Of a stretch of DNA of 64,000 bases, positions 18,740 through 29,974 are shown piece by piece (position 1 is the first letter of the stretch; each line of letters begins with the position of its first letter). This DNA is from Hamiltosporidium tvaerminnensis FI-OER-3-3. Lineage: Eukaryota > Fungi > Microsporidia. The notes below the pieces were generated by a model, which did no database searches, had not been told where the DNA came from, and saw only the letters and a list, made by a program, of their open reading frames with translations. The stretch is taken from positions 62,001 to 126,000 of the forward strand of contig JAKIMF020000013.1 of the NCBI GenBank assembly GCA_022605425.2. The letters run 5' to 3'. A program made the position numbers and the translations under genes.

Positions 18740-19345
18740 ATGAATACGTTTTTAATCTATTCATTACTAATATTTACAATGACCCAGGCAATGATTGTAT
18801 TTGATTTGAATGGTGTATTGATGAAAAGATTAAATAAAGCGAAAAGTAAAGAAATAAAAGAAATTGAAACTAATAATGTAATGCGAGATATAACTCTTAA
18901 CAGTTCTGTGGTGTTTTTGAGACCAAATTTTGAAGAACTAATTTTATTTTTGCGAAAGCACAAAGCAAGATATATTGGATGGACAACGGCTATTAGTTCA
19001 ACGGTGGAAGAACTTAAATTACATTTGAAGGGATGGGGATTTGAATTTGAAGATATTTTATCTCAAGAATATTGTGATGTAGGTGGTGTCAGGCCACCAG
19101 ATATAAAATCTGAAAAGTGGATAAAAAATTTAAATATTGTGGCTGAAAAATATAAATGCTCACTAAAAGATTGTGTTTTGGTGGATGACAGCAGAAATAA
19201 ATCAGTAGAAGGACAAAATTTTATAAATGTGGCTGAATACAATCCTTTAAGTAATAAAGAGGATCAATATTTAAAAGAATTGTGCGTAGCTCTCCATGAC
19301 TACGTACAATGTAATGATGATGATTGCGAATATAAGAAAAAGTAA
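18740..19345 (+). CDS. FCP1/NIF-type HAD phosphatase-like protein with predicted signal peptide
   Basis: VFDLNGVL, FLRP, WTTA, SQEYC, KNL and LVDDS motifs; 17-aa hydrophobic leader ending TQA. Confidence 0.85.
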   Translation: MNTFLIYSLLIFTMTQAMIVFDLNGVLMKRLNKAKSKEIKEIETNNVMRDITLNSSVVFLRPNFEELILFLRKHKARYIGWTTAISSTVEELKLHLKGWGFEFEDILSQEYCDVGGVRPPDIKSEKWIKNLNIVAEKYKCSLKDCVLVDDSRNKSVEGQNFINVAEYNPLSNKEDQYLKELCVALHDYVQCNDDDCEYKKK

Positions 19346-22444: not shown

Positions 22445-22873
22445 ATGAAATTCGGCACACACGAAATACCTGAAGATCACATAATATTCAAAACAAAATA
22501 TTCTTTTGTATTTACAAACATTCGACCTTTTCTACCAAATCATTTACTGGTATCGCCTATAGCAGAAAAAATGCGTATTTCTGAATTAACCAAAGAAGAA
22601 AACGAAGATATTTTTGAAACAGTTAGAAATATAACCACTGTTCTTTCTAAAATTTACGAAGGATTTACTATAAATGTGCAGGATGGAGTATCAGCAGGAC
22701 AAAAAGTTTTACATGTTCATGTACATGTTGTACCACGAAAAAACAAAGATTTGAAATATAATGATGATATTTATAAAGAAGGAGCACTCGATTATGAAAG
22801 AGTTGAAAGAAGTTATGAAGAAATGAAACAAGAAACTTTATATTTACGGTCGTTGTTTAAAAAATATATTTAA
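22445..22873 (+). CDS. HNT2: Fhit-branch HIT hydrolase (diadenosine polyphosphatase)
   Basis: MKFG..., NIRPFLPNHLLVSP, QDGVSAGQKVLHVHVHVVPR, NDDIY, RSYEEM; CCC at 22440-22442. Confidence 0.93.
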   Translation: MKFGTHEIPEDHIIFKTKYSFVFTNIRPFLPNHLLVSPIAEKMRISELTKEENEDIFETVRNITTVLSKIYEGFTINVQDGVSAGQKVLHVHVHVVPRKNKDLKYNDDIYKEGALDYERVERSYEEMKQETLYLRSLFKKYI

Positions 22874-23381: not shown

Positions 23382-23870
23382 ATGAAACAATCTTTTACAA
23401 TCAATGACATACCACAAATTCTTAAATCTCTAACCGATAAACAAATTTACATTGAAAATTTTACTACTGAACAGATTTTTTACCAACTAAAAGATATAAC
23501 AGATGAAATAATAAAAGAAACAGAAATATTTATTAAAGAAACTGAAACACTTTCTTCAAATTCTTTTTTAAATTTTATAAATAGTACTAACCAACTTGAC
23601 TGTAAACAATCACTAAATGAAGAAAATAACCACAATATACCCATCAATCACAATTCTAATGAAACAATAGAATCAAACGAACATAAATCGTTTGAAAAAA
23701 CAAATCACGAGTCCAATGAAGAAACAGATAAATTAATTAAGAAAAATAAAATAGAAAATTTATTAAATAAAAAAACAGCAAAAGAAATTTTAAATTTCTT
23801 AGATGAAGAAGTAGAATGTTCTATTTCTACCGATAACAGTATATCATCTACATATCTTAACGATTATTAA
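23382..23870 (+). CDS. Protein resembling the N-terminal part of U3 snoRNP protein Mpp10
   Basis: IYIENFTTEQIFYQL resembles the recalled Mpp10 N-terminal motif (L.I.NFD.EQIWQQL), followed by an acidic region; CCCC upstream and AATAAA at the stop. Confidence 0.65.
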   Translation: MKQSFTINDIPQILKSLTDKQIYIENFTTEQIFYQLKDITDEIIKETEIFIKETETLSSNSFLNFINSTNQLDCKQSLNEENNHNIPINHNSNETIESNEHKSFEKTNHESNEETDKLIKKNKIENLLNKKTAKEILNFLDEEVECSISTDNSISSTYLNDY

Positions 23871-24102
23871 ATAAATTAAAAATTATTTATTTTTCTTTAT
23901 TTATATTCTATTGTTTTATACTTTATTTCAAATATATGGTTTGATTCTATCTTTCTCCTTTATACTTATTTATTTATTTATTTATTTATTTTTAATTTAA
24001 TTAATTTAATTAATATTTTATTCAAATATATTTTTTATAATCTATTCTACTTACTTATTTATTAATTGATTACTTTACTTATTTATTTATTTATTTATTT
24101 TT

Positions 24103-27100
24103 ATGGGTAGAAAGAAAAATGTTAGCAGCGAAATATCGAAAAATACCAAAATAAAGGCTGCAAACGACGCTGATGAGGTGAAAAAGAGTGATAGTGAGAT
24201 ACAAAAATGTAAGCTACACCCACCGGCGATTCCCCTACCTTCCTCCTCCTACACAACAATAACACCTCCACCACCAAGCCAAACATGCAGTAAAATGCAA
24301 AATAGTGGGCTTGACACCTTACCTTCGCCTAATGCACCAGTTCCCTCTTCGGTTGAAGTCTCTGCGTGCGAGCCATCGTACGACATGACAAGCCCCTGTA
24401 CTCTAGCTATTCCGGAAGGTAACAGGCTAATGGCATTGCGGACGATATTCGATTCCGTAACAGCCGACCCGAAGGAATGGCCTCGAATTGTTTTTTTTGC
24501 AGTACAGACAAGGTTTGAAAGAATGCCAAGAAATGGCTGGACAGAGCTTCACAGGTACTATAATGAGAAATTTGGCTGCACTGAAACTCTCGAAGTGTTA
24601 AAAAAATTGGCACAAAGTGAGATGGGAAAGGATGTAAAATCAGAAGAGAATGGAGAGCGACGTAGAATCGCCACTTGTCTCGCTGATACATGCACCTTGA
24701 CCGACACCACGGAGTACATAAACCTGAGAGATAAATTCTTGAGTAAAATCAAAGAAATCTCTGAGAACGAAATTGGAAAAGTGGTGGTCCGAACTAGAAA
24801 ACATCCAAATGAATTGGTTGATAGTAAAGTTCTGGATCTCATAAATCGAGTAGTCGGTGAATATGCAGGAGCTCATGTACCTGAGTCAATTACGGAAGCC
24901 GCGTATATCATGCAAGCTGCGCAGGTATGCTATGACGAGGCAACACGTAAAGAGAAGCCTAGATCCGCTTGGAAGGAAAACATAAAAAGTAAAATTTCTA
25001 AGTTAGTACTTTCCAAAGAAATCCTCGAAAAAGCTCGTAAGCAGGAAAAGCTCTCCACTTCGGAAACGAAGAGCCTTAAGAAAATCATGCGAGAGTTTAA
25101 TTTAAACTTGAGCAGCGTAACTGATCTTTCTGAGGCTTTAGTTAAGAAGAATGAGTCTTTGAATGTTTACGAGAAAAAAATTACGATGCATGAAAGTAGG
25201 AAGCAATTCCGAAAAGAGAATCGTATGTTTGAGCTTTTCCGAGGTCGATTTTATCGTGGGTTATCCGAGCGTGTGGAATCCGAGCATGTGGTTAGCCGTG
25301 ATGAAATTGTGAGTTTTTGGTCTACAATGTGGAACAAAAATGATGACACAGTCACGTACGATGATTATTTGACTCTATTTGTATCAGATAATCATCCGAC
25401 CACGTTTCCTTCACTTGATGAATTTGTGAATATCATTAATTGGCTTCCTAATTGGAAAGCTGCTGGAATTGATGGTATTTACAATTTTTTCATTAAGAAA
25501 CTTACAACTCTTCACAAATATCTTTATGATATTGTGAAAGTTATATGTTTAGAAGGAACACCTCAAGCTGATTAGTTTTACTGCGGGCTTACGTATTTGA
25601 TACCGAAAGGAATTCCACGAAGAGGCTCTGACTACAGGCCAATCACTTGTATGTCCAACCTCTATAAGTTAACGACAAAGTGTGTAACGAAAGTCGTTCA
25701 ACTTGAAGTGGAAAGGCGAGGGTTGCTTGCAGAGAACCAACTAGGGGCGGTAAGAGGTGTGCAGGGAGCGAAAGAGCAGGCTCTACTGAATATTGCCTTA
25801 AATAAAGAGTATGGAAATAATCTTAAGGCAACATGGATTGATGTTAAAAAAGCTTATGATTCAATAGATCATGCTTAATTAACTCAATGCATTGAAAACC
25901 TTAATTTACCTGATTGGATCCTGAAATTTATTAAGGTAATTATATCAAAATGGAAAATTGATATATCAGTAGGGCCTGAAAAAATCATGAGCAAGAAGAT
26001 TGATAGAGGGATTCTACAAGGAGATAGTCTGTCACCTTTGTTATTTGTGTTGTGTATGGATCCATTAAGCCGAAAGCTTAATGAAAAATACACAAAAGTG
26101 ACTGTAAAAAAGGATGCAGAATCCCATTCTACCAATCATCTCTTGTTTATTGATGATCTAAAGCTCCTTGCTAAAGACAGTTCGACATTGAGTGCTATGA
26201 CAGGCGAGGCAAAGGAATTTTTAGAGGTGATTGGCTTAGAGATTAACAAAGAGAAGTCAGCCACAAATGATACGTGTTGTGAAGATACTGCTACTCTTCT
26301 AGAAGGTGTTAGTGTTTACAAATATTTAGGAATAATAGAAGATAGCAGAGGAATCCCAACACGTAGCTCATTTGAAGAAGTACAGAGCAAACTTATATCA
26401 AGAGTTGAAAGACTTTGTCACACTAGATTAAATGCAAAAAATTTATTTTCTGCAATCAATCCACATGCGATATCGTTAATCAACTACCACATAGGAGTAC
26501 TTCGACTTGAACCGGCTGACTTCTCTAAGTTAGATGATGCAGTGCGTGCGGTGTTAGTGAAGAATAAGATACATCTCCGCCCAGGATGTAAAGAGCGTTT
26601 ATACCTTCCTAGAACAGAACTTGGAAGAGGCCTACATAGTGTTGAGTTGCGAAGCGAACATATGCTTCTGCAACTCTTGGATTGTCTGGAAAAAAGTAAA
26701 GAAATATCAACTAGACGAGCAGCAATCCTCAAGGTGGAGAATAATAATAAAACCCATCTTGCACTAATAAAAGGCTTCTTAAAAGTAAAGTACAGGTTGG
26801 TAGAAGAAGTCACTAAGAAAAGTTTAGAAGAAGCTCAACTTGCAAAACTATATAACGAAATAGAAAAACGAAAACTCCATTCAAAGTTATATAATGCAAG
26901 GAAAAATGAGCTTGTGAGTGTTAGTGACTCTTCAAGATGGCTAAAGAGAGGAAATATTAGGCCACGAAATGAAGCTGTGTTCTGCTATATCCAGGATAAA
27001 AATGTATTCTGGGGAGCAGATGGTGTGTGTCAACATTGCGGGAAGTCTGGTAAGACTGTGGATCATCTAGCTACTAGATGCGAAAAAATGCTAGGCCATG

Positions 27101-27900
27101 ATTACACTAGACGGCATAATGAAGTGGTCAGATGCCTACACCTTCTTCTTCTAAATAGATATAAGTTTAAGTCTTCAAAACGAATAAGGAGCCACTCAGT
27201 TCAAGAAATTCTTGATAATGAGTATGCTGAGATAAGAGTGAATACCAGAATAAAAACTGATGTTAAAATTCGGAACAACAGACCTGAATATTTATTTAGT
27301 AAGAAGAAGAATAAGCTAACACACATTGAAGTAGAAATCACTTCCTACGATTTTTTCAAATAGTTTAAACTAAAAACTTAGGAAGTATGACCTCTGGTTA
27401 ATGAGTTGGCTCTTATTTATAGGTGTAGTGTTGAGATAATCCCTTATGTGATGACCTGGGACGGTATTGTGACAAAATACCATAAATCTCATCTTAAAAG
27501 ACTAGAAATACCCATGAATGTAGAAGCATACATTCAGTCTATAGTACTTAAAAAGACAGTCGAAACTATTTCCTTTGATCGACGAAGAGGACTTGAGTCA
27601 GGACTAAATGCCGAAGAGAGCTGGGAGAGAGCGTCAATGGGTGTTATTATGAGATCAGAGATGCATGAGGAACCAATACCCCTTTAAAAGAAGCGAAAAC
27701 AGAGGAAGATGGTGCCAAAAATTTTAAACCAAAATATAAAGCCCCCTTTATTTTACAAGGAGGAACCACTTTAGAGGAACCGACCAATAACATAAATGAA
27801 GAGTCGGATTTGGAAGCAGAGACAAAAGTGGTCAAAGAGGTAGAAGAAAACATGTAAAAATGGTAAAAAATATTTTAACCCAGAATTTAATTAAATAAAT
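24103..27900 (+). mobile_element. Full-length R4/Dong-like RLE non-LTR retrotransposon with a disrupted single ORF
   Basis: RT motifs (YRPITC, WIDVKKAYDSI, GILQGDSLSP, FIDD, YKYLG), CCHC knuckle, RHNEV and RLE domain. In-frame stops at 25573 and 25876 plus frameshifts after ~27290. TSD-like ATTTATTTATTTATTTTTA at 24085-24103 and 27901-27919. Confidence 0.95.
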
Positions 27901-28130
27901 ATTTATTTATTTATTTTTAATTTAATTAATATTTTATTCAAATAAATTTTTTATAATCTTTCTTTCTACCTTTATACTTACTTACATACTTATTTATTAA
28001 TTTAATTAATATTTTATTCAAATATATTTTTTATAATCTATTCTACTTATTTATTTACTTATTTATTTATTTAATTATATTCTACTTCTACTTCTATTTA
28101 TACTTCCAATATATTTATTTACTTCTACTT

Positions 28131-28667
28131 CTACTTCAATAGAGTCACATTTCTAATCTTTCTTAACTTTTTAATATCTTTACTTTCTTTACTTCTCTTT
28201 TTACTTTCTTTTCTTCTTTTTTCACTTTCACTAACATTTTTATCAAAATTTATTTCGTTTTCATTTTTAATCAATTCTTCTTTATAAAATAAAGAATTAC
28301 AAAATAAAAGTTTGTAATCCGTAATTTGTAAAAGTTGTTTATCAATTAAAGAAAACAACTCCCTCATTTCTTCTTTACTCAGATTATCATCTTCTATATT
28401 TGTTATATCTTTGTTCTCTTCATTGTTTTCAATTCCTTCGTTTATATTTTCTTCTTTTTTTTGTAAAATCCAATTGTCATATTTTCTTTCTTTAATTCTT
28501 TCTATTACAACTTTTCTTATATCAAAATTTTCTTCTAAAATTGGTATTAAAGGTTTTGTTTGGTCAAATTGTATTTCTTGATTTAAAAGACTACCCTTTG
28601 GTCTTTCTCTACCTTCTACTTCTCCTTTATATTTCCAATCTGTAAATTCGTTTTCTTCAAAAGTCAT
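28131..28667 (-). CDS. MPP10: Mpp10 conserved central/C-terminal part
   Basis: WKYKGEVEGRERPKGSLLNQEIQFD...IERIKERKYD and EEMRELFSLIDKQLLQITDY match recalled Mpp10 motifs (W.L.GEV....RP..SLL...L.FD). An in-frame stop lies 7 codons upstream of the ATG. Confidence 0.85.
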   Translation of the reverse strand: MTFEENEFTDWKYKGEVEGRERPKGSLLNQEIQFDQTKPLIPILEENFDIRKVVIERIKERKYDNWILQKKEENINEGIENNEENKDITNIEDDNLSKEEMRELFSLIDKQLLQITDYKLLFCNSLFYKEELIKNENEINFDKNVSESEKRRKESKKRSKESKDIKKLRKIRNVTLLK

Positions 28668-28948
28668 TAAAACGGTTATAAAAAATTAAAAATAAAAAGA
28701 AATTATTCGGATAAAATACTAGTAAAATACTAGGAATTTTAGAAGAATATAAGAAGGGGTTTTAAAGAGGAGTAATACAAAGAAATTATAAATCATTTAG
28801 TAAAATACTAGGAATATAAGAAGAGGTTTTAAAGAGGAGTAATATTCTTACTTCTTATTATTCTTCAGTTTACATTTTTATTATTTCCATTTTCTTAATA
28901 AAAAAATATTTCTAAAAAATTCCTTAAAAAATAATAAAAAATGCAAGT

Positions 28949-29197
28949 AAATTTAAAACCAAATTCCATATTTTTTTATCATTTAATACTTCCTTTAAAT
29001 AAATTCACACGTTTTTTTTAAAAAATAATAAAAAATTTAAAACCAAATTCCATATTTTTTTTATCATTTAAAACTTCCTTTAAATAAATTCACACGTTTT
29101 TTTTAAAAATAAAAAATGCGATAAAATTTAAAACCAAATTCCATATTTTTTTATCATTTAATACTTCCTTTAAATAAATTCACACGTTTTTTTAAAA
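28949..29197. repeat. Tandem repeat, 3 x ~85 bp, in the MPP10/uL2 divergent promoter
   Basis: AAAACCAAATTCCATATT...TAAATTCACACGTTTT present three times. Confidence 0.93.
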
Positions 29198-29222
29198 AAT
29201 GAAAAATAAAAAAAAAATGAAA

Positions 29223-29225
29223 CCC
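29223..29225 (+). promoter_or_regulatory. CCC motif before the start codon (microsporidian initiation signal)
   Basis: AACCCTTTAA-ATG. Equivalent motifs at 22440, 23364, 17419-17421 (minus) and 56791-56794 (minus). Confidence 0.7.
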
Positions 29226-29230
29226 TTTAA

Positions 29231-29974
29231 ATGTCAAAAGTAATAAGAAAAAACAGATTAGGAAGACCATGCAATAAAAAGAATAAAATGTTTAAGATTG
29301 CACCTTCAATAATACCATCTTTTGACACACCAGTAACTGCCACAGTAAAATCTATATTACACGAACGTGGAAGAGGTGCTCCTTTGACTTTGTTGAACTA
29401 CAAAAAAGATAAAAAATACGATGCAGTTATTGTGTCTGTGGAGGGAACAAGGACCGGACAAAATATTGAAATGGGTGATAATGTACCTTTATCTATTGGT
29501 AACATAACAAGACTTAAGAATGTACCTGAAGGTACGTTGGTATCTTCTGTTGAACGTATTCCTAACGATGGTGGTAAATATGGACGATCTGGTGGCTGTT
29601 TTGTTGCTGTGGTTGCGCATAATAAAAATACAAATCAAACTATTGTCAGACTTCCTTCAGGAATTAAAAAAACTGTCAGTTCAGAAGGAAGAGCAGTGAT
29701 AGGAATTGTGGCTGGTGGTGGAAGAACAGAAAAACCTATTTTAAAAGCAGGAAGAGCTTACTACAAGTACAAGTCTCGTTCTATCTCATGGCCTGTAGTC
29801 AGAGGTGTGGCTATGAACCCAGTTGACCATCCACACGGTGGTGGTAACCACCAACATATTGGTCATCCTTCTACTGTATCGAGACATGCTCCTCATGGAC
29901 AAAAAGTCGGTCTTATTGCAGCAAGAAGAACTGGTCTTAAGAGAGGTTCAAGTAAGGAATTGGTTAAACAATAA
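29231..29974 (+). CDS. RPL2: 60S ribosomal protein uL2 (L2/L8)
   Basis: GRGAPL, RLPSG, AGGGRTEKPILKAG, WPVVRGVAMNPVDHPHGGGNHQHIG, GQKVGLIAARRTG. Confidence 0.98.
   Translation: MSKVIRKNRLGRPCNKKNKMFKIAPSIIPSFDTPVTATVKSILHERGRGAPLTLLNYKKDKKYDAVIVSVEGTRTGQNIEMGDNVPLSIGNITRLKNVPEGTLVSSVERIPNDGGKYGRSGGCFVAVVAHNKNTNQTIVRLPSGIKKTVSSEGRAVIGIVAGGGRTEKPILKAGRAYYKYKSRSISWPVVRGVAMNPVDHPHGGGNHQHIGHPSTVSRHAPHGQKVGLIAARRTGLKRGSSKELVKQ

Follow-up and report, generated by a model that had tools for sequence, protein, structure and literature searches.

We analyzed a window of 64,000 nucleotides from the genome of Hamiltosporidium tvaerminnensis FI-OER-3-3 (contig JAKIMF020000013.1, positions 62,001 to 126,000, forward strand). 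Hamiltosporidium is a microsporidian parasite of Daphnia. The window is AT-rich, with ~20-25% GC outside its transposon, and contains two small open reading frames (ORFs), of 162 and 178 residues, that are located on opposite strands, point toward each other and show complementary, non-overlapping homology to the N-terminal and C-terminal portions of Mpp10. Mpp10 (MPHOSPH10) is an essential scaffold of the Mpp10-Imp3-Imp4 module of the small subunit (SSU) processome, or 90S pre-ribosome. It is conserved among eukaryotes and sets the positions of Imp3, Imp4 and Utp3/Sas10 within the earliest pre-40S particle. The two-gene layout is conserved at seven loci, and we consider it likely that Microsporidia, including Hamiltosporidium, encode Mpp10 as two small proteins from convergent neighbouring genes. 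The gene order in the window is NIF (+), HIT (+), the 162-residue ORF (+, hereafter the N ORF), a non-long terminal repeat (non-LTR) retrotransposon, the 178-residue ORF (-, the C ORF) and uL2 (+), with the features located as follows.

18740..19345, + strand: NIF/FCP1-type phosphatase gene (Pfam PF03031, E = 5.7e-13), a synteny anchor
22445..22873, + strand: HIT-domain gene (Pfam PF01230, E = 1.3e-18), the anchor directly upstream of the pair
23382..23870, + strand: putative Mpp10-N gene, 162 residues (Pfam Mpp10 profile 41-153, E = 1.3e-3)
23871..24099, no strand: left part of the original intergenic spacer, with AT-rich ~80-nucleotide repeats of families D1, D2 and D4
24100..27903, + strand: degenerate copy of a non-LTR retrotransposon (long interspersed nuclear element, LINE), with RVT_1 in two ORF pieces
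27904..28130, no strand: right part of the original intergenic spacer, with ~80-nucleotide units like those left of the LINE
28131..28667, - strand: Mpp10-C gene, 178 residues (Pfam Mpp10, E = 7e-9, above cut-off)
28668..29230, no strand: putative divergent promoter region of Mpp10-C and uL2, with tandem repeat families D3, D7 and D9
29231..29974, + strand: ribosomal protein uL2 gene (Pfam PF03947, E = 5e-41), the anchor beside the pair

Read runs X1-X4, all from one study, contain 85-91% of the sequence words of the stretch, and no RNA run is recorded as containing them.

Complementary Mpp10 homology of the two ORFs

The N and C ORFs are convergent, and each has its own ATG, its own stop codon and in-frame stop codons upstream. 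Excision of the LINE in silico leaves ~457 bp between the two stop codons. These data bear out the first-pass annotation of the window, which had described two independent ORFs on opposite strands that would be ~450 bp apart without the LINE. It had also expected non-overlapping N- and C-terminal matches to the Pfam Mpp10 family, which were recovered at profile positions 41-153 (sub-threshold) and 313-379, and had raised the question of an intact Mpp10 elsewhere in the genome, which a six-frame search answered with a match at the C locus only.

The C ORF is the more readily recognized of the two. Its residues 10-74 correspond to positions 313-379 of the Pfam Mpp10 family (PF04006; profile length 529), with an E-value of 7e-9 and a score of 35.4 bits, over the gathering cut-off of 29.9 bits. 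Mpp10-C begins at the Imp4-binding block, W..GEV..RP..SLL (residues 10-74; the form RP.NSLL is also given), which is followed by a conserved helix, a basic stretch and a conserved C-terminal tail. In a search of Protein Data Bank (PDB) sequences, the C ORF aligned with yeast Mpp10 residues 323-423 and with the Chaetomium Mpp10 fragment that was co-crystallised with Imp4 (5o9e_B), and the tail aligned weakly to the yeast Mpp10 C-terminus (domain 4 of the PDB match). Compared by hhalign to an alignment of 16 full-length metazoan Mpp10 proteins (607 columns), the C family corresponded to columns 296-377 (97.9% probability, E = 4e-13); at low stringency the alignment reached column 560, with low confidence past column 377. 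The tail and the helix are conserved across 12 microsporidian Mpp10-C sequences. The six-frame PF04006 search of the assembly (21.6 Mb, 17 contigs) returned the C locus as the sole match, and no intact full-length Mpp10 was found elsewhere in the whole 21.6-Mb genome by this search. The C ORF is 99% identical to a hypothetical protein of H. magnivora, from which the gene differs at 6 of its 537 nucleotides.

The N-terminal domain of Chaetomium Mpp10 has two hydrophobic motifs, each of which is able to bind Utp3/Sas10, with the second being required (Sa-Moura et al. 2017; PMC5558966). In zebrafish, the Sas10/C1D domain of Sas10 binds Mpp10 residues 1-230, and the Sas10-Mpp10 interface includes a short motif that corresponds to motif 2 (Zhao et al. 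2019; PMC6451133). The N ORF and its orthologues contain both motifs of the full-length Mpp10 N-terminal domain in the same order. In the window protein, motif 1 spans approximately residues 20-50 and is followed by an acidic, N-rich linker and by motif 2 at approximately residues 130-145; in the family, motif 1 is a hydrophobic sequence of the form G-F-T/D-x-E-Q-I-aromatic-aromatic-Q.

Several profile comparisons point to the same assignment. Residues 20-133 of the N ORF correspond to PF04006 positions 41-153 (E = 1.3e-3, 18 bits, under the 29.9-bit cut-off), and PF04006 was the top Pfam family in five of the nine N-family members (E = 4e-4 to 7e-3), with the profile start always at 39-41. 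By hhalign, the N family matched columns 78-119 of full-length Mpp10 (E = 3.3e-5, probability 72%), and at low stringency it was collinear over columns 49-230, second motif included. When 178 ORFs from nine microsporidian loci were ranked with a hidden Markov model (HMM) of the Mpp10 N-terminus built from metazoan sequences only, N-family ORFs took ranks 1-4 (E = 8.6e-6 to 0.04); the chance of four such ORFs topping the list is ~4e-7, given six members in the set. The N ORF had no match in the PDB search, the Encephalitozoon hellem orthologue had no usable match in the Atlas feature search, and a word-index search with the N ORF alone retrieved the H. magnivora copy only, an alignment query being needed to reach other genera. 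The individual lines are modest and concordant, and on them we judge it very likely that the N family is homologous to the Mpp10 N-terminus.

The N ORF is single-copy in the genome. Its codons 1-79 are 100% nucleotide-identical to those of H. magnivora, while the 300 nucleotides upstream are ~70% identical, and all four amino-acid changes between the two species within the first 108 codons fall in the acidic, N-rich linker. This pattern is consistent with selection on motif 1, although it does not constitute a formal test of the ratio of nonsynonymous to synonymous substitutions (dN/dS). The H. magnivora copy (L013:5270-5645, compared to window positions 23382-23738) shows a repeat expansion in the N-rich linker, and its contig ends inside the gene.

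The gene pair in other Microsporidia

When the C ORF was compared with 1.8 billion representative proteins in a filter-free phmmer scan, 15 matches were obtained, 11 of which are 150-183 residues in length and align end-to-end. The owners of these short proteins include Edhazardia aedis, Astathelohania contejeani, Conglomerata obtusa and E. hellem; the only long match was a 558-residue tunicate Mpp10. On this evidence, the norm in Microsporidia is a short Mpp10 whose sequence opens at the Imp4-binding block.

The convergent arrangement is likewise found outside Hamiltosporidium. The E. hellem locus reads NIF (+), Mpp10-C (+), a 157-residue gene (-) and uL2 (+), with 82 bp between the convergent genes, and that of Astathelohania contejeani reads Mpp10-C (+), a 167-residue gene (-) and uL2 (+). 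The products of the 157- and 167-residue genes contain the N-terminal motif of the window N ORF as well as the second motif near the C-terminus. Convergent N/C pairs are also present in a European Nucleotide Archive (ENA) metagenome contig (L007), a Joint Genome Institute (JGI) metagenome contig (L018) and two Logan assemblies (L019 and L020). In total, N orthologues were recovered in six other lineages and the convergent pair at seven loci, comprising three named genera and further lineages, and the physical linkage of the N gene to Mpp10-C extends to lineages in which Mpp10-C is just 26-38% identical. A profile search with the N alignment retrieved these neighbours of Mpp10-C as EHEL_010170, EROM_010100 and TCON_1891, all labelled hypothetical protein. 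In metagenome scans the two family alignments, N and C, produced pattern matches, none of which tblastn confirmed. A full-text literature search, in which journal coverage was incomplete, found no description of a split Mpp10 in microsporidia.

The uL2 gene flanks the pair in E. hellem, Astathelohania, L019, L020 and H. magnivora; a NIF gene lies upstream in E. hellem, L007, L020 and H. magnivora; and a HIT gene lies ahead of Mpp10-C in Conglomerata (L005) and L007, and ahead of the N gene in H. magnivora. The order of the window recurs on two contigs of an independent H. magnivora assembly made from short reads. In the window uL2 is head-to-head with the Mpp10-C gene, whereas in L019 and L020 it is head-to-head with the N gene. 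The window region at 28700-29230 contains three tandem units of ~85-90 nucleotides (28930-29222) and two shorter duplicated blocks (28720-28844). In one further lineage, known from Logan runs (L006:3007-4489 and L021:268-1887), Mpp10-C is head-to-head with a NOL10-like gene, outside the NIF/HIT/uL2 context; NOL10 is a nucleolar pre-rRNA processing factor.

Origin of the pair and alternative explanations

In Chaetomium Mpp10, the N-terminal domain is followed by a long acidic loop, which binds Rps5/uS7, and then by the sites for Imp4 and Imp3 and a basic C-terminus (PMC5558966). Each of the other eukaryotic groups surveyed has Mpp10 as one gene (PMC3879963). When the extents of the N and C proteins are placed on the published motif map, the microsporidian break would fall in the disordered acidic loop, between the Sas10-binding and the Imp4/Imp3-binding modules. 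The convergent pair is found at LINE-free loci of other genera, which indicates that the fission predates these lineages; by this comparison the fission would be old and conserved rather than local to Hamiltosporidium. Because Mpp10 is a single gene in the other eukaryotes surveyed and Microsporidia are nested among opisthokonts, fission, and not an ancestral two-gene state, is the parsimonious direction.

The first-pass annotation had proposed that a fission combined with an inversion gave rise to a two-chain Mpp10, and this continues to be the simplest origin for complementary, non-overlapping halves on opposite strands. We suggest that the ancestral Mpp10 gene was located on the minus strand, head-to-head with uL2, and that one inversion, with one end in the acidic loop and the other shortly after the stop codon, would have generated the tail-to-tail pair. 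The outcome would be the order (NIF, HIT), C (+), N (-), uL2 (+), in which N keeps the old promoter shared with uL2 and C gains a new start. Inversion of the N half would instead yield a head-to-head pair, which is not seen; the half proposed to have inverted is the C half. In Hamiltosporidium, the order HIT (+), N (+), C (-), uL2 (+) indicates that the block is flipped relative to both anchors, and the two genes may thus have been turned later as a unit between HIT and uL2. The divergent promoter of the C gene and uL2 that had been noted at first pass is indeed present in the window. It would, however, be a derived state, as the N gene faces uL2 in four other lineages. A young LINE would then have landed in the ~457-bp spacer, leaving both ORFs untouched.

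The LINE itself is identified by a reverse-transcriptase domain, by many dispersed copies and by defined 5' and 3' ends. Its reverse-transcriptase pieces (PF00078) lie in three broken ORFs, with interruptions at ~25575-25597, 25878-25987 and 27363. The family comprises at least 40 scored copies at 92-100% identity, from 199-851 first-look candidates, and most copies start at the equivalent of window positions 24099-24103, the ATG of the ORF, and end at 27898-27906. The distance from the inserted copy to the nearest stop codon is 229 bp on the N side and 228 bp on the C side. AT-rich units of ~80 nucleotides lie on both sides (23963-24102 and 27884-28090); the unit at 23997-24082 is 91% identical to that at 27993-28078, and another copy occupies 27913-27998. 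These flanking repeats could stem from an unusually long target duplication or from tandem repeats already present in the spacer. By these comparisons the LINE is a recent spacer insertion, a bystander without a part in the Mpp10 split.

A LINE positioned exactly between two gene pieces, in a genome rich in the same element, could also be taken to mean that a single Mpp10 gene was broken recently, in Hamiltosporidium alone, by the LINE and a local inversion, or that the region is mis-assembled, with one or both pieces being decaying pseudogenes; the short-read H. magnivora contigs do break near both genes. A local event tied to the retrotransposon was implied by the first-pass annotation as well, and this part of it did not hold, since E. 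hellem, Astathelohania and others carry the same convergent pair in compact loci that lack the LINE. Both ORFs are moreover intact and of conserved length, the LINE ends lie in the spacer, and N codons 1-79 have remained nucleotide-identical to those of H. magnivora despite diverged flanking DNA. We regard a recent break as highly improbable, and rejected both a LINE-caused break and a mis-assembly because the cross-genus synteny of the convergent pair contradicts each. Less probable still is that the N and C ORFs are joined by trans-splicing into one Mpp10 message, for which nothing speaks beyond the complementarity of the pieces. Each ORF has its own ATG, stop codon and upstream in-frame stops, an arrangement kept in all lineages examined, and Mpp10-C is annotated or predicted as a stand-alone protein of 150-183 residues in several genomes. 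Trans-splicing, already ranked low at first pass, is unnecessary for two ORFs that are independent in this way, and we rejected it as well.

A more substantial alternative concerns the N ORF. Every N-family Pfam match is sub-threshold, no PDB or Atlas match was obtained, and the middle of the N protein is low-complexity and acidic, as in many unrelated proteins. This might mean that microsporidian Mpp10 lost its N-terminal half and that the 162-residue neighbour is an unrelated acidic protein, with a likeness to Mpp10 that reflects chance or composition. We find this unlikely because the match depends on a specific hydrophobic motif rather than on the acidic part, with the second motif in the right order. 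The same Pfam family and profile start were found independently in five members, N-family ORFs held the top four of 178 ranks with the metazoan-only profile, and the N gene remains beside Mpp10-C at seven loci at which Mpp10-C has diverged to 26-38% identity.

Several points nonetheless weigh against a two-chain Mpp10. All Mpp10 matches of the N family score 15.7-19.8 bits compared to the Pfam gathering threshold of 29.9, its hhalign probability is only 72%, and its profile has no match in PDB sequences, although yeast Mpp10 is among them. No N gene adjoins Mpp10-C in Edhazardia, Conglomerata or the L006/L021 lineage. We infer, rather than observe, both the fused-to-split direction and the origin in a single inversion. 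Finally, the expected partner of the N protein is elusive: Utp3/Sas10 was scored absent in E. cuniculi and E. intestinalis (Feng et al. 2013), and PF04000 (Sas10_Utp3) was not found in the genome, where there was only a 16.8-bit match within an 884-residue frame. The two-chain reading, in which both proteins would still act in 18S rRNA maturation as separate chains, remains the one we favour. Since Mpp10 consists of linear binding motifs strung together and does not form a folded domain, two chains could plausibly do the same job.

A candidate Sas10 partner and comparison with known systems

A candidate for a reduced Sas10 is encoded on another contig by a 153-residue ORF (G000:C6:815769-816230, + strand, the same as L015:1228-1689). 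This candidate mini-Sas10 matches PF09368, the Sas10 C-terminal domain, with an E-value of 2.6e-3 and 18.7 bits (cut-off 25), and yeast Sas10 with an E-value of 1.3. Its three best Atlas feature matches are Sas10 clusters, at 0.82-0.84, which we treat as a lead only. A single-sequence model of the protein is a long helical hairpin; this model had no Foldseek match, and phmmer with the N-terminal half of the protein gave nothing relevant.

Complex prediction with the N ORF and the candidate mini-Sas10 gave a score of 0.55, compared to 0.01 for the best of three controls, with at least 65% contact agreement between runs and a partner predicted local distance difference test (pLDDT) value of at least 56. 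Among solved complexes, 51 of 78 pass the mark used to judge such predictions, as do 2 of 108 mismatched pairs; at scores of 0.60 or lower it is passed by just 5 of the 78 solved complexes and by all 4 passing mismatches (of 180). The result is classed as 'weak support'. We treat binding of Mpp10-N to the candidate mini-Sas10 as a modelled hypothesis, a lead that falls short of evidence.

The genome contains genes with a Brix domain, the family to which Imp4 belongs. On contig 12, two near-equal Brix matches in 236-residue frames (G000:C12:512433-512951, + strand, and 544009-544527, - strand; 72-73 bits) lie ~31 kb apart in inverted orientation, an arrangement suggestive of a recent inverted duplication spanning a ribosome-biogenesis gene.

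Taking the partner into account, we tentatively raise the possibility that many canonical Microsporidia use a two-chain Mpp10 in which a free Sas10-binding protein of ~160 residues acts with a mini-Sas10 of ~150 residues, and a separate protein binds Imp3/Imp4. If this were true, covalent linkage of the modules would be dispensable, and Utp3 would have shrunk beyond detection and not been lost from the phylum. The two-chain Mpp10 itself would correct inventories in which microsporidian Mpp10 appears as one short protein and Utp3 is scored as missing, and would assign a function to microsporidian hypothetical proteins such as EHEL_010170 and TCON_1891. It would also provide a natural experiment suggesting that the halves of Mpp10 need not share a chain, which is relevant to the question of how the Mpp10 module is delivered or stabilised by Sas10. 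The split state, the convergent pair and its position relative to uL2 offer a rare genomic character for microsporidian phylogeny. A two-chain Mpp10 does not represent a novel type of system, and the retrotransposon at this locus is incidental to it.

Comparison with Mpp10 elsewhere shows what would have been kept and what changed. As in other Mpp10 proteins, the two Utp3/Sas10-binding motifs, the acidic linker, the Imp4 block, the helix and the basic tail occur in order. Whereas Mpp10 elsewhere is one chain of ~500-800 residues, the Hamiltosporidium proteins have 162 and 178 residues and are encoded on opposite strands, and most of the acidic loop is gone, including the stretch that binds Rps5/uS7 in Chaetomium. 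The database entries XP_003886624 (E. hellem), KAF7682894 (Astathelohania) and KAM0688503 (Conglomerata) are orthologues of the window C gene, with the same length class and the same start; they are labelled 'U3 small nucleolar ribonucleoprotein component / MPP10' and treated as the whole of Mpp10.

A further parallel is with eukaryotic genes of several motifs or domains that underwent fission, such as folB-folK-folP of the folate pathway, in which a single ancestral gene likewise gave separate genes that jointly keep its parts (PMC4224340). Unlike the folate-pathway cases, the Mpp10 pieces are adjacent yet convergent, a layout indicative of an intragenic inversion rather than of the gain of a stop and a start or of duplication with complementary loss.

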